The notes under the pieces: model-generated
What the model saw: only the letters and a program-made list of their open reading frames with translations
Databases searched by the model: none
What the model was told of the DNA's origin: nothing
In this document: piece by piece, positions 50,996-59,606 of the stretch
How positions within the stretch are numbered: the stretch's first letter is position 1
How the letters are laid out: every line of letters starts with the position of its first letter
Translations under genes and position numbers: made by a program
Origin: Trichosphaerium sp. ATCC 40318
Taxonomy: Eukaryota; Protista; Tubulinea
Assembly (NCBI GenBank): GCA_038496445.1
Contig: JALMLS010000232.1
Coordinates: 186,001-250,000 of the forward strand
Direction of reading: 5' to 3'
Length of the DNA: 64,000 nucleotides

Positions 50996-53900
50996 TTAAT
51001 AAAGTATGCATTGTACCATTCTATTGGCAAAAGACAAGCTTATTATTTGACTCAGATCTCCTTCAATTTCGCGACTTTTCCTTACATACTTTAACTTATG
51101 TTTTAGTATCTTTATAACATCAGCAAAAGCAGTTTGTTTCTTTTGAAGAACACGAATAAAAGCATGAAGTGATAGCCTGTAAAAAAACAAGTCAGAAAAA
51201 AAAATCACTTTATCTAAAAAACTCTACAACTACCTTGCTTTTAAGCTTGGTATAGTATGTAATAGTATTGCATATATTAAATAATAAGAAAATGGCGGTA
51301 TGATCAATTGTACGTAAAGTACATTCCGAGAAAAACACCTTGGAAAAAAATATTTTGGATGTTTTACATAAAAAAATAACATAGTGTACCAAACTATCTC
51401 GTTTTCAGTTACTTCAAAACAACATCCTGCCTTTACAGCAGATCCACATCTTGTTATTGCTGGTATAAGCTTTTGAATCTTATACACAATATTCGTAATT
51501 ATTTCTAAGACAAAAGTTATTCCCTCAACACGCTGTGCTCACAAAGGAGAAAAAATCAAGAAAACAAAGTCGTTTCGTACCTGCTATCTTAACAACACAC
51601 TCTGGTACTTTAATAGGCAACTGCCCTATATAAGCATTTATCTTAATAGCCGCAAGAAGAATTGAACTATCTAAATTTGTAGTTAAGGAAAGGGGTTCAA
51701 AACATCGCTTTTAGTTCAGAGTATAAAAGGATACAAATATTCATGTAAACTGTTCTCTTTGTGTTGATGTTACTGTCGAAAATAATAGGATTAAGCTTCT
51801 GCTCTACAAACGCATAACCGCGTTTAAGAAGAGAAGACAGACAGTTTGATGTATGATTTACTGTAAGTGCATCACTGATATCTCCAAACAAATTAAGGAT
51901 AAAACACAAAAAATAAGAAAATTCTTGTTACAAAAGAAAAGGTTGTAGGAGGATACAGTTACACATTAAAGGCCTGAAAGAACGCATAACTTCAAGTGTC
52001 TCAACGTTAAAGTTATATCCATACCATGGAAGATACGTATTACCATCTAAAGTAATAAGCTCGGCAATTCAAAAACAAGAATGGTGTAAAAGAATAAAAA
52101 AACCAAATACCTAAAGGCTCATCAGGCAGTTGGAAAGGAATACCGCTCATAGACGAATCAGAAAAACTGGTATAAGTTTTTCCAGTATTAATGTTCATGT
52201 TGTAATCTTCGAATCCTTTACTGATACGTGTCACAAATGAGATTGCTTCTTGTTTATCTGTTGAAACAAAAAAGAAATCATCAACATATCGCATCAAAAG
52301 TGACGTCTCTATTGAAGGTGTGTAACTGTTAGTTACTCGAGATGAACCTTACTTAATGTACGTACTGGAATTCATGAACATATTCAAATGTTCGTTTTCC
52401 ATATGTCCATAATACAGAGCACATAATAAAGTAGATACTACAGAGCCTTTTTTATGTGTCAAAATACAAAAAAAAAAAAAAATGACACTGAAGGGTACCT
52501 TGAGCAATTCCAATTTCTCGTTTGTACCAATTTTTACCCGCCTAGTGAACGTGTTAGAATATGAGTATTAAAGCGCTCATCAGAGTAAGAACAGATGATA
52601 TTTCTTCCGGAAAACCCTCAAAAACACAACGCACCTTAACTACGCCATCAAGTAGATGAGCACGCAACTGACTTAGTAAAGTAGCCTTCTTGACATCATA
52701 GTATTTCTCTGGCTATAAATATATTAATGTAAAGAGAGGAAGAATATAAAACCCGAAGCTTACCTTATCAAGAAAGACAATGTTTCGTGACCTACTTGCT
52801 ACTTCTTTTGCAAAAGAGCAAAACTTGTAATAGCCTCCGTTTTGTATACTAGCTTTATAACGTGTATGAATGCGATCCCCACGTAATCTGCGCTCCTCAT
52901 ATGGTCTATAGAGCAACGTCTCCATTTTCTAAAAAATCTCGTTAACAGTTGTAAAGAATGGTGTTTTAAAACCGAGAAAAAAATAAGAAAAAAGTTTAAG
53001 GCTTACGACATAGTTGTCAAAGAGGTACTTGACAAACCCGAATATTTTCTCTTTTATAATAGTATCATAAGCCTTTTTAATATCTGCAATGACAAAATAC
53101 AACTTTGGCATCTTCCCTTGAGTACAGCTAGACTTTATACGTTTAACATAATCCGAGTATTTATGGTAAATCTCATTTGGAGAAAAAACCGAAGCACCAA
53201 AGTATTGACGGCAAGGTCCTTCCTAGTAGTAGTTTAATAATAGGTATCGAGTTTTAAAATATATAGTTGTGGGTATTAGTAATTTGTGTTAGCAATCAAA
53301 GAGCTAGAGCTACTAAAACGTATTCGTTTAAGCAAAAAAGAAAGTGAAAATAAAAAAAGTGGCAAAAAATATGTTCATTGTGCATACCTTTAGTTGTGTT
53401 AGGAGTCTGAAAGCAGTAGATAATATTTGATTCGTAGAACGGGGCCTTTATATGTGATCATTAGAACAACGGAAAAAGGGTTGAGATAGAGATGTCGTAC
53501 CTATTTCCCTGAAATGAACGCATTAATTTTAGAGAGTTTTGTTTACCCAAGTTATTCAAAGGACGCAACCCTTTTGCTTTCGGCAAGAAGCGCATTAGAG
53601 CGTATCCAAGTCCGGTTTTCTTCAAAATACTCTTGGCTTTCGTCTAGGTGAAACGTCATCATCAAACTCTGAAAACTACTGAACGAAGACAGCCGCAAAG
53701 TCAAATTCTTGCCAAAAAACAAAAGAAGAAAAAACGATTCAACACAAGAAATAACGTACTTCACTTACACGTGAGAGCATCCCCCGGTTCACTAACTCTA
53801 ACATAACGTGTTACAAAAGATTAAAGTAATAATAAGAAATAAACAAAGGTACAAAAACATGTGAAAAGGCATACCATCCATTTGAATACTAAATAATTTT

Positions 53901-56900
53901 CCCCAACAACCTTTGACATAGTAAAAAAGTCTGTTCTTATGTGGAGCAGTATTCGTTATATAAAAAGCATTACCCTAGAGAAAAATATGAGCGTTGGAAA
54001 ATAGCGGAATTTCAAGAGAAAATTGCTTTCGCTTTTTTTGAAGAAAAATTCACGAGAATCACATACCAACACTTCACAAATAAACTCATTAAAAAACCAT
54101 TCCAATAGACGTAGCATAAAATTACGTTTTTTATATAATCCTGAAGGTGGGTCATGGCCTTTAGCTTTCATCCACTCACAATCATTAAGCTATAAAAAAA
54201 AGAAAAAGATATCAGCAACAACTAAAAGCAATGACCAAACAAAAGTACCTTCATGTTATTCAATAACGACTTTGTGCCTACTGTTTCATAAATCCGTAGT
54301 TTTACAAACTCTATAATATCTGTTTTCTGGTTAAAGGAGAATATTTAGGTATCTTCCAAGTGAAAAAAAATAAGTACTTAGGGATACTTTTGTGAACTGT
54401 CTCACGGTTACTTGATGAACCCCATAAAGCCGAAGGTATTATAAAATCAGTAATACATCTAACATAGTTTGAAACGCTATGGTATGATTCAAACCGACAA
54501 AGCAAGCGTTGAACAGGTGATAAATCATCACTCCCTAAAACAACTTTTTGGCTTTTTTCTCCATTTGTCTGACTATCGTTTCCTTGTGAGTTCATATCCA
54601 ACTTCCGTGGTTTCAACGGTTCTACAGGTACTGCAGGAATACTCTGAGACTAGGAAAATACATGTCAAAACGGCAAAAGCAGCAAAATCTAATCAACTCA
54701 CTTGTACAGTTTGTGAGTTTTCCAAAAGTACATCACAATTCCAATTATAGTTTGAAGGCTTTTTTCTTCTAAAAGGAGAACCTATAAGTGTTGGTGATGA
54801 CAAGTTACAAAAGTATTCAAGGCTGTACGGAAAGGCTGAGAACTATCACTACTATGAGAGTTGGTAATCTTCATAGGGGATTGTGTGTAAGGTAGTGGGC
54901 TGAGTGGAGGCGAAGGCAAGTTTTCGTTGGTATCTTTGGGTGTTGATATTTTTTGTTCGCTTGCAGATGGTGAAGGTTCTTTGTGATTGCTGTTGGGTGT
55001 CAATCCTTTCTGTGTATTCAGTAGACACGGTGGGGAATAGGATTTATGGCCACTACTACCTGATGCCAATCGTTCCTGACACCTGAGTTGCTTTGGCGAT
55101 AAAAGTAGCAATGAGTTCGCATCTTTAAAAGAACTACTCTACAAAACATAAAGTCAGCTCATTTCATTTTTGCGTTTTAATACCTTAGAACCACTTGAAG
55201 TCATCTTATCTTGCGTTCCTTTAGACCCACTTGCAGTGCCATGAGATATACTTTGAGACTAAACTTATTTAATAATATACTTATGAAGCGGTTGCATAAC
55301 TGTACCTTCATGTCAGGTTCTGGAAATTGTGCTTTACAGTGTTTGTTCAATAATTTGCGCCAAGGGCACTTTTTAATGTTACGAATAACCTTGTTTAGGA
55401 TAGGTATAACATTCATAAGTCGCTTGGGCATGTATTTTTCTAAATATGAGTTAAAGGTAAACTAGGTACATGTCAAAAAAAAAAAGTACCAAATTTAAAT
55501 ATTCGTTTTGCAAATGCCAAGGCACCTTCTTCAGTACAAGGTACAGTAGACAAAAAATCTACAAATCAAGTTAAACACTAGATAAATTATGGTATCTAAC
55601 GTGCGTTCAGGAGAGAAGAATAAGTCACCTGACATGCGATATAGAATCTTTCTGCGAGTAATATCTGTAAACACTGGTTTTTTAGGGTTTGTATTTTTCT
55701 TTTTAGAGGGTTTCTTGGTAAACATTGGAGCCTTGGATCCAACTAATGGTGCTGTATTAGACCTCACCAGAGGAGGAGCTCTTATTAGAGTGTTCTTTGT
55801 GTTTGATTGTGTCTGTGGGTTGAGACGAGGCCGTTTTAGAGAAGGTCCTTCTGCGCTTACTGAACGGCCATACAAAATAACTCGTTTGCGCTTCTTACCA
55901 CGGAGCTACACAAGACTATCAGTGGCAACACTATCAAAGACATTATGTGTGACGTACTCCAATACGTTTTCGTAATATTGTAGAACCAATGGCCCTTGGT
56001 TTGAGAGTTCTGGTTTTGATAGGGACAACAGTATCTTCAACTTGTTTTTCGGCACATCTTAATTTTTTTGCTTTTCTTCTTTTCCAAGAAGAAGGACGAA
56101 CTTTACGCTTGCGAGTCTTACTAGCCTCGTTTGCTGATACATTGCTGTTGTCACTAACCTCTTTAGAACCGTTGCAGGCACTCTTATGCTTTGCAATAAA
56201 AGCTTTACGGCTGCATAGCAACAGCTTTCTTCTTATAGCACGATAACTACGTCTTATTTTTCGGGCATTATTTTTTTGTCCTTTAGATGGTTCAGGTTTA
56301 ACTACCTTTAGATACTCTAAATTACGCCCACTTGCTATAAAACTTGTTATTAAAAACACCAATATACAATTAAAAAAACACGTGCCTTGGACATAGCATT
56401 TATTGCCTAAACATGGAAACACCCAAAAATACTTGAATAAGTATGTCATCAGATCATCTCCTATCATCTTCAATAACGAATCCCAAGCTTTGTTAAAGCT
56501 ATTAATACACTACATAATACTTCTCTAGTTCGTACTTGCACTGCCTACTTCGTTTCCAACAGAGTTTGGGAATGAGATGCGGAGCTGGGATGTTTGCTTT
56601 TCTTATCTTAGTCTTTATGGCTAGTACGCTACACGTACTGGTATCCAACGAAAGCCTTTAGACAGGGCGTGGTCAGATTTATCTTGACATAGTTCCATTC
56701 TTAATCTCTTGATTACCTGTCGTTGAGAAGAAAATTCGCCTATTGGCGGTGGTCTCGGTGATTTTTTAGGCTTGCCAACCTTACAATGTGTAAAACCGTT
56801 GTATTATTAAACCTTGCATACCAAAGTGGTGTCGACGAGCTGTAGTACGTCATGGGAACAACGGTGAAAGAAAAGCGAGTTAGAACAGGTCTACACATCG

Positions 56901-57365: not shown

Positions 57366-58952
57366 TTATTGGTCTAATCGGCCTGGGTCGCTACTTTCAG
57401 GCATATTTGTAGCAGGTCCGCCATGTACTGGACCATTTATCATCGGACCTGTATTAGCACTTGTACCGGCTACAGTAACGTTAGAGGCCAAACAAAAAAA
57501 AAACTTGTGAAATTGTGAAAAAAAAACGTGTAGAATTCCTGACTTGATTTTGTGATTTTAAACGCAGCGTTCACGTACTCCCAGGTTGCATCATTACACC
57601 AGGTGCCATCTGCGGTTGGTACCCAAACGCATAAGGTTGTTCGTACTGAGGAGGCGGAGGATAAGGATAAGCAGGATAAGGGTATGGTACATAATACCCA
57701 TAAGGTGGCCATGCCATTGCACCAGGAGGTGGCGCCCATCTAATTTCTAACATTAGCCAAAGACATAATTTGTTGTAAACAACTAAATTTCTGCGCATAC
57801 CCTGCTTGTGCTGCATAAGGATCAACTGTACCATAAGGCCAATTATAAGGACCAGCAGCTGATACTGCTTGTTGATGCATACGTAGAGCCTTACGGGCTT
57901 CTTTTTGTTCTTGTGTATCTGCGTATTTGACTAAAGACAAAAAGCCTGTGACTTAAAAACTTCTAAAAATCTAAGCACTGTACCAGTTAAAGGTGGTGCG
58001 CTTTCAATAATTTTATAGCCATTCATAGTCTCCAATGCGCGTCTCGAACACTCTAAGCTCTCAAAACGAACAAAGCCTATTTGTCGGCTTTTACCAGTAT
58101 TTCGGTCTATCATTACTTTACAATCTTCAATTACACCAAAATTACCAAATAACTGGCGTAATTGCTCTGTAGGAGAGTAATATTAGTCTCTCTTTGGTAC
58201 ATTGACAAAAAAAAAAAATTCGGTGTTGTAGTTACCTTCTGTTGTGGTTGGTAGTAACGGTTTAACGTAGAGGTTAGTCGATTCAGCTTGAGACTGTAGA
58301 ATTGGAATATGAGCTAGGAGAGAAGGAGAGTAGCTTGATGAAGACGGGGATTGATTGGCTAGCTTGCACAATAACCGTTTGTGCGAAATACGCATGCCAT
58401 TCATGGCATTTATGGCAGCTTGAGATTCGTCTGCTTTTTGATAACGAACAAACCTAAAACCTTATCAGAAGCTATACTTTTACGTGATGATGAAAACCAC
58501 ACAATAAGAATTTGAAGAATTACAAATTGATGCTAAATTACTATTTTGTGTTGCATCAAGTCGTTGCGTGCTAGAACCGTGCACGAGATACGTGTTTAGC
58601 ATGTTTTCTGGGGTTTTTGCTGATTTAACGGATACTTTGAGCGTTGATCAACAGCAATCAAATGAAGAAAAAGCGCTTTTAGCGCGTTTATGAGGCTGTT
58701 GGTTAAATTTTGACGTGTTTTAAATGGAGCGTACCCGTATCCTAAGCTTTTTCCAGTCGCTTGGTCTACCATGATTTTAGACGACACTACCTCACCAAAT
58801 GGTGAGAATAGAGCGTAAAATTCTTGTTCGGTGAGCTCCGCTGGCAAGTATTTTACAAATACGTTGCAGTCGTCCAGACCAGCTGGCACCTTTTCGTTGG
58901 GGTCTTGTCCGGTAGAGTTTGCCATAATTGGTCTATTGCTGCTCTCTGACAT
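57366..58952 (-). CDS. ELAV/Sxl-like RRM RNA-binding protein with Pro/Tyr-rich tail
   Basis: NVFVKYLP..TGKSLGYG/FVRY and NLYVKPL..TGKSRQIGFVRF..VKYADT (two clear RRMs); PYPYPAYPYPPPPQY tail. Confidence 0.88.
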
Positions 58953-59606
58953 AGCTACAGAATAGTATTATAGTATAGTATAGTATATACACAATAGTGG
59001 GCTGCGCTGTTGGCGAAAATACAATTTGGTAAGTGCATTTACTTCACTGCTTAACTGAGCGACTTCGTTTGTTTACGCCCAAACACGCACTAACCGTATT
59101 ATTTAACAATACCAACGCTATTTTACTTTTGGTTCTAATTTCTAATGTCCTTGTTTGGCTCTAGCGTTAGCTCCACGCCCATAAACCCTAACCATTGTTA
59201 TAAAAACGTTGAATTGGTGTCAAAACGTCACAATTTGGCGTAAACAACAAAAAACGATTTTGACAACTTGTTTCCTTTGATGGCCCCAGAACTCCGACAA
59301 ATATAGGCGTATGGAAACAAGCGACCTCACAAGTATTATTGCTGGTATTGTGTTCGGTTTAATTGAACATCAAAGTTCATGCGGATTTCGAACGTGTACC
59401 ACTTACTCCACGTCATCAATACTCCTAAATTAGTGTAAAAACATATACAGCGCATTCTCACGAGACACGAGAACATGGTGTGCACTGTGGGTTGCATTTT
59501 CACTTAATCTCAGGTTTGTTGGCCACTATCGGAAAATAATGACGGTTCACCTGCTGAACATTATTTAAACAACACAAAGAAAGCAACAGCGGACCATAAA
59601 GTAAAA

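Follow-up and report, generated by a model that had tools for sequence, protein, structure and literature searches.

Minor (U12-type) introns account for less than 1% of all introns. Why do they persist, and how does one central gene come to contain three of them? The gene considered here encodes telomerase reverse transcriptase (TERT) in the marine amoeba Trichosphaerium sp. ATCC 40318, and lies on the minus strand of a 64,000-nucleotide (nt) stretch of contig JALMLS010000232.1 in GenBank assembly GCA_038496445.1. This whole stretch is called the window below; it corresponds to C67:186001-250000 of the 70.3 Mb, 642-contig assembly used in this work, and positions in the gene are counted from its first letter. 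The introns are called A, B and C in the order of transcription. With a probability of about 0.68, all three are genuine U12-type introns, A and B are retained ancestral minor introns, and the clustering in TERT is mainly historical; this reading draws on splice signals, reading frame and intron positions shared with other TERTs.

A preliminary description of this DNA, made from the letters alone, took the gene to be TERT, and database matches of its exons bear this out. Two of them match Pfam Telomerase_RBD and the exon of motifs C/D matches RVT_1, and the best matches in the PDB are solved TERT structures. For the gene model, 34 coding blocks were anchored and all frame-keeping introns between adjacent blocks were enumerated. 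The coding region as modelled (50996..56458, minus strand) has 25 exons and 24 introns; with the introns removed, it forms a single open reading frame (ORF) of 1224 codons to the stop at 50996, without an internal stop. It spans the end of the TEN domain, the TRBD, the reverse transcriptase (RT) domain and the C-terminal domain, and the predicted protein has the domain order expected of a TERT, namely the TRBD followed by RT motifs 1, 2, A, B', C, D and E and a C-terminal extension. The model starts inside the TEN domain, with TEN-domain exons upstream left outside it; the true start is further upstream, and a candidate ATG is found at 57078-57076 (minus strand). The full model is collinear with plant, fungal and diatom TERTs and can be aligned with them from end to end, and the assembly has one copy of the gene. 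Retrieved loci were aligned locally with the spliced protein model, and database searches were run exon by exon.

All three introns are of the GT-AG type, lie in phase 1 and start with GTATCC, and each has a box of the type TCCTT(T)AAY close to its 3' end. Intron A (54387-54320, minus strand, 68 nt) has the donor GTATCCCTA and the box TCCTTTAAC at 54338-54330, intron B (51956-51882, minus strand, 75 nt) has GTATCCTCC and TCCTTAAT at 51899-51892, and intron C (51734-51671, minus strand, 64 nt) has GTATCCTTT and TCCTTAAC at 51689-51682. The distance from the end of the box to the end of the intron is 10 nt in A, 10 nt in B and 11 nt in C. Exonic AT follows every one of them, the junctions reading a/at in A (AAA A/../AT ATT) and t/at in B and C, where the slash marks the intron. 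Intron A is located in the TRBD, at about position 28 of Pfam Telomerase_RBD; B splits a Tyr codon (T/AT) just past RT motif E; and C interrupts the Tyr codon in the conserved N-I-Y motif of the C-terminal domain. The coordinates, donors, boxes, phase and following AT given in the preliminary description are thus all present on the minus strand. Its further statement that removal of the introns restores the TERT frame also stands: by exhaustive enumeration, each is the sole frame-keeping GT-AG choice between its flanking coding blocks, and the 1224-codon ORF is the result. At all three junctions the model stays exactly collinear with plant and fungal TERTs, with no gap, and if any one of the introns were retained, an in-frame stop would come within about 10-25 codons.

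Compared with the U12 donor consensus [AG]TATCCTT, the donor of C is a full match; B and A keep the GTATCC core and are relaxed at positions +7 to +9. The longer branch element reads TTCCTTAAC in C and ATCCTTAAT in B, with the branch-point A 11-13 nt from the end of the intron in both. The tails between box and 3' end (CAGAAAACAG, TTGTTTGGAG and TACAAATTTAG) contain no polypyrimidine tract. Phase 1 and a T at position -1 are known biases of U12 introns; all three introns fit the first and B and C the second.

How often such signals meet by chance can be estimated both in the window and in the whole genome. In the window, GTATCCY alone is not enriched (10 occurrences against 7.5 expected), and the combination of donor and branch box gives 2 matches against 0.00 in 100 shuffles. 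In the genome, where reversed patterns served as controls, the pattern GTATCCT-N20-100-TCCTTAAC has 59 matches (intron C among them) against 8; a GTATCCT donor with TCCTTRA and an AG 5-14 nt further on has 191 against 18; and relaxed RTATCY donors with the strict box have 266 against 133. The donors GTATCCC, GTATCCTA and GTATCCTG recur elsewhere in the genome with perfect branch boxes. The co-occurrence of donor and branch motifs, which the preliminary description had left to be compared with chance, is therefore above chance in both settings. It had also found TERT to be the only gene in the window with introns of this kind, and this was upheld: a relaxed scan of both strands gave only one further pair of donor and box, at 61554-61448 (minus strand), and neither this nor a second candidate at 1930-1855 (minus strand) was accepted as a U12 intron, since neither lies in a coding frame. 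Judged on donor, box, phase and the lack of a polypyrimidine tract, together with the minor-spliceosome parts encoded in the genome, the introns are best read as U12-type, as first proposed; for C this assignment appears virtually certain, for B it is highly likely, and for A it is very probable. As a separate observation, TCCTTGAC boxes seem to be commoner than TCCTTAAC in the genome as a whole.

Genes for U11 (66 bits) and U6atac (52 bits), each of which exceeds the Rfam gathering score, are present in the genome, as is a U12 candidate that carries the canonical GUAAGGAAAAU branch-site box and an Sm site. Among the proteins, PDCD7 (U11/U12-59K) has an exon match at 42.5 bits. In the mechanism that we envisage, the U11/U12 di-snRNP (a pair of small nuclear ribonucleoproteins) would recognise donor (GTATCC) and branch box (TCCTTAAY) jointly, and removal of the intron would be catalysed by U4atac/U6atac.U5. 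Retained A would then truncate the protein before the RT domain, and retained B or C before the C-terminal domain. In the U6atac candidate (L003:1501-1621 = G000:C20:307774-307894), the stretch aligned to the box that pairs with the 5' splice site, AAGGAGAGA, reads GCCGAGAGA; this difference may be connected with the relaxation of donor positions +7 to +9 (GTATCCTA, GTATCCTG, GTATCCC) in U12 introns of this genome.

Set beside canonical GT-AG U12 introns, those of the amoeba share the GTATCC(T) donor, the TCCTTAAY box 10-13 nt from the 3' end, the missing polypyrimidine tract, phase 1 and (in B and C) the T at -1, in a genome with matching genes for U11 and U6atac and a candidate one for U12. 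They differ in being very short (64-75 nt), in the relaxed +7 to +9 of A and B, in the extra T of the A box, in the undetected U4atac, and in being known here from sequence alone.

The draft genome of Trichosphaerium sp. comprises 70.87 Mb in 710 scaffolds, with 37.7% GC, 27,369 gene models, about 7.7-8.7 introns per gene and a mean intron length of 75 nt (PMC10521059). The three genome-wide motif counts suggest that there are roughly 350-500 U12 introns among about 210,000, or about 0.2%. This density is ordinary and comparable with the values of a pan-eukaryotic survey (PMC10639083), and it adds an estimate, several hundred, for an amoebozoan lineage that had not been surveyed. The chance of at least three minor introns in a 28-intron gene is about 1e-5 to 2e-4, and 0.03-0.5 such genes would be expected per genome. 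The concentration in TERT to which the preliminary description drew attention is thus real and far above chance.

U12 introns are known to cluster within genes as a general pattern (Moyer 2020, PMC7367187). The amoeba gene resembles the known cases in having more than one minor intron, beyond chance, and in coming from a genome with other close pairs; with three, it is at the high end. In animals, TERT is not known as a minor-intron gene. A non-random distribution of U12 introns, with several in some genes, was reportedly noted by Burge in 1998 and by Levine and Durbin in 2001. Elsewhere in this genome, two strong U12-type introns within about 600-700 nt on the same strand form a pair in a gene for a leucine-rich repeat protein (G000:C9:148904-149555, L035) and a second pair at G000:C69:132551-133289 (L037). 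A further close pair on C34 was rejected as belonging to one gene; part of it is in a D123/CDC123 gene, and it probably extends over two genes.

The positions of the introns in other TERTs bear on their age. Six annotated TERT proteins were threaded exactly through their genomic loci, and all introns were mapped on one alignment. Intron A is at 0 nt offset and in the same phase as U2-type introns in the TERTs of the basidiomycetes Phellinidium, Pleurotus and Rhodosporidiobolus, and so is intron B. Altogether 7 of the 24 amoeba TERT introns coincide exactly with fungal ones, against 0.16 expected, and the local alignments show good conservation and no gaps. Sites A, B and C carry no intron in the plants, which have one 14 nt upstream of B. 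In human TERT, going by exon sizes, this plant site is presumably an intron position and the sites of A, B and C, and a further site H described below, are not.

The most similar complete TERT that was found comes from an 8.8 kb protist contig, L108, and the same gene is present in L109 (JGI 3300044959 and Logan SRR35364754). A U12-type intron that reads GTATCCACC...TTCTTAAT...AG/ATATT occupies its B site, with the same Tyr codon and phase as in the amoeba. There is an intron at the identical position at A as well, with the donor GTATGC and a TCCTTTAC box upstream, and none at C (the two introns are located in L108:4141-4204 and L108:6434-6582). The A-site intron of L108 looks like a conversion from minor to major type caught midway. 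A second contig, L100 (Ga0134125_10519860), also has a U12-type intron at the B site, GTATCCTTT...TTCTTAAC...AG. Across a panel of 68 metagenomic TERT loci, the A site is broken in 3 and the B site in 8, all with U2-like donors, and the C site is uninterrupted in 37 and broken in none.

A fourth phase-1 site, called H here, connects the amoeba gene with plants. Between the coding blocks FFSPE and (H)FLSTVP there is no GT-AG solution; the only join is a 46-nt GC-AG intron (55604-55559, minus strand, donor GCACGT, phase 1), which gives a clean ORF and splits the His codon (c/at) of the H-F/I-L motif. TTTAAC stands 12 nt before its AG, and the intron may have arisen by conversion from the minor type. 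At exactly this position (0 nt offset), the TERT genes of Canna (L105), Helianthus (L107) and Amborella (L111) have U12-type introns with the donors GTATCCT or GTATCCA; that of Amborella reads GTATCCTTAT...GACCTTAAT...CAG/ATATC. The same H-site U12 intron is found in a plant-like metagenome contig (L054:3575-3853), and the three basidiomycetes have U2-type introns at this position. The angiosperm intron is like the amoeba ones in its gene, phase 1, GTATCC donor, CCTTAAT-type box and the ATAT after its AG; it differs in location: its site is the HIL His codon in the N-terminal half, where the amoeba has its 46-nt GC-AG intron. We found no paper that describes U12 introns in TERT, the plant one included, and curated intron databases may list the plant one.

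A plant U12 intron at a fourth phase-1 site, taken with the shared positions of A and B, makes TERT look ancestrally rich in minor introns. Changes of intron type are held to go from U12 to U2 (PMC7367187; PMC10639083), and once this is accepted, the simplest history is one in which TERT early on carried several phase-1 minor introns (H, A and B), of which different lineages kept different members. In that history, amoebae and fungi would have inherited A and B from their common ancestor or an earlier one, and H would predate the split from plants. Basidiomycetes, which have no minor spliceosome (PMC10639083), would have converted H, A and B to U2 type; plants would have kept H, and the amoeba would have kept A and B and converted H. 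The signals, frame, collinearity, shared positions, small nuclear RNA (snRNA) genes and PDCD7 match are observations; from them we infer that the minor spliceosome removes the introns and that the change of type ran from U12 to U2. On such a history, TERT is a compact natural test case for the conversion and retention of minor introns over more than 1 billion years, and for whether retention is selected.

Several observations pull in the other direction and should be weighed against this history. Within the gene, the donor tail of intron A is not consensus, and its box has one extra T, a variant that is only weakly (about 2-fold) enriched with GTATCC donors in the genome (44 against 23 in the control). 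The U2-type donors of TERT are loose (GTA and nearly anything), and the U2 branch sites, yTAAC, are located 10-15 nt from the AG, like the U12 boxes. One further TERT intron (55489-55440, minus strand) has the U2-type donor GTACTTTTT and yet a U12-like CCTTTAAC / ACCTTTAAC 10 nt from the AG. Since U2 sites occur at the same distance and a U12-like box occurs behind a U2 donor, the box discriminates less here than it does in animals. No protein derived from transcripts or from a relative was found to span the junctions: a representative search with the motif-A exon gave no self-hit, and there were no word-index matches for the exon between B and C or for the exon before A. Regarding the machinery, the preliminary description had tied its reading to the presence of minor snRNAs, and this held only in part. 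U11 and U6atac are above threshold, but the U12 candidate, with its intact box, scores 39 bits, below the Rfam cut-off of 53; U4atac is absent from the matches of the genome search, and a search of the genome for the zf-U11-48K family gave no match. As for the history, the comparison panel consists of plants, basidiomycetes and metagenomic loci; L108 and L100 are known from contigs alone; and shared positions could in principle also reflect parallel insertion or a change from U2 to U12 in this lineage.

The preliminary description also suggested that telomerase output may be gated by minor splicing in this lineage. In this case, slow or limiting minor splicing would set the output, for example in a way tied to proliferation, and the activity of the minor spliceosome would determine the amount of functional telomerase mRNA; the coupling would be ancient and selected, with the old sites H, A and B predating the split of amoebae, fungi and plants. 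We regard this as unlikely, though it is compatible with the historical reading. Three serial dependent introns would multiply any inefficiency, retention of one means a premature stop, and U12 introns persist in the TERT of at least three lineages (plants at H; the amoeba at A and B; L108 and L100 at B), as selection would allow. However, the subsets differ by lineage, and fungi converted all of them, which resembles neutral sorting. A survey argues that neutral processes explain most of minor-intron evolution (PMC10639083), and the minor introns of Physarum are not less efficiently spliced. If there were such a coupling, an amoeba with three serial minor introns, including a possibly new one in C, would be the most extreme case known.

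Positions A and B could also be ancient without having been of the minor type, the introns having been U2-type ancestrally and having become U12-type in the lineage leading to the amoeba and to L108 and L100. It is true that the U2 type predominates at A and B among the sampled lineages that have an intron there, and that L108 has GTATGC at A. Yet the acquisition of both long U12 motifs is deemed far less likely than their loss (PMC7367187; PMC10639083), and the lineages with U2-type introns at these sites are basidiomycetes, which were obliged to convert or lose their minor introns. The TCCTTTAC box retained by the A-site intron of L108 fits a recent change from U12 to U2. An ancestral U2 type at A and B is thus improbable, more so than gating.

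A slightly smaller chance still is given to the introns being ordinary U2-type ones in which GTATCC donors and TTAAC-type branch sites have come together by accident. The loose U2 donors of this gene, the U2 yTAAC sites at the same distance, the unenriched GTATCCY of the window and the weakly enriched variant box of A all lend something to this idea. It fails to account for the pairing of donor and box, which is 0.00 in shuffles of the window and 7-10 fold over control in the genome, and for the presence of both signals in 3 of 24 introns of one gene, which would be very unlikely. At the B site, both U12 signals have been kept in L108 and L100, which are distant organisms, and there is no polypyrimidine tract between box and AG.

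Least credible of all is that the three introns are recent, lineage-specific U12 gains of the Physarum kind, possibly from a mobile element: C is in no other TERT examined, and the AT(A) after all three recalls the rTATC...GATAy termini of Physarum, but A and B match fungal introns exactly and B matches U12 introns in L108 and L100, which refutes the idea for these two, while the introns are single copy with interiors that are unlike one another, AT follows the AG in just 7 of 25 other strict U12 introns of the genome, and the density of about 0.2% is ordinary. A transposon-derived or introner-like origin of the Physarum type was accordingly rejected; there are no near-identical copies, and comparison of the interiors of A, B and C gives no similarity beyond that of shuffles (z -1.8 to 0.8). 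The minor-intron expansion in Physarum polycephalum (Larue, Elias and Roy; bioRxiv 10.1101/2020.10.12.336362) resembles the present case in concerning an amoebozoan and short introns with AG/ATA. In contrast to Physarum, Trichosphaerium shows no expansion (about 0.2%), no repeated copies and no TA duplications; its branch box and the box of its U12 snRNA are canonical rather than a TTTGA/GCAAAGAA pair, and A and B are old and not new.

Lineage-specific gain, which the preliminary description had allowed for all three introns, therefore does not hold for A and B; C alone is unshared and could have been gained. The C site is uninterrupted in the six annotated TERT genes, in L108 and in the 37 metagenomic TERT loci that cover it, and four of the sampled TERTs are intron-rich. 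Somewhat more probably than otherwise, C was gained in this lineage; the alternative is an old intron lost elsewhere. If it is a true gain, it would be a rare instance of minor-intron creation outside Physarum.

A close relative is represented by a 1277-bp metagenome contig, L038 (JGI 3300044452), with 70-80% amino acid identity in the TERT exons. The contig stops before it reaches either site, about 220 nt from A and about 400 nt from B, and two metagenome scans did not recover adjoining contigs (exact 8-mers were too strict, and the profile pattern excluded the lineage's own RYVDDFFF). It lacks two U2-type introns of the amoeba TERT (window positions 54066-53975 and 53006-52929), a sign that closely related lineages have recently gained or lost introns. 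The next gene upstream of TERT, also on the minus strand (57370-58960), has exons like an RNA-recognition motif and codes for a tail rich in Pro and Tyr; its end lies about 300 nt ahead of the candidate start of TERT.

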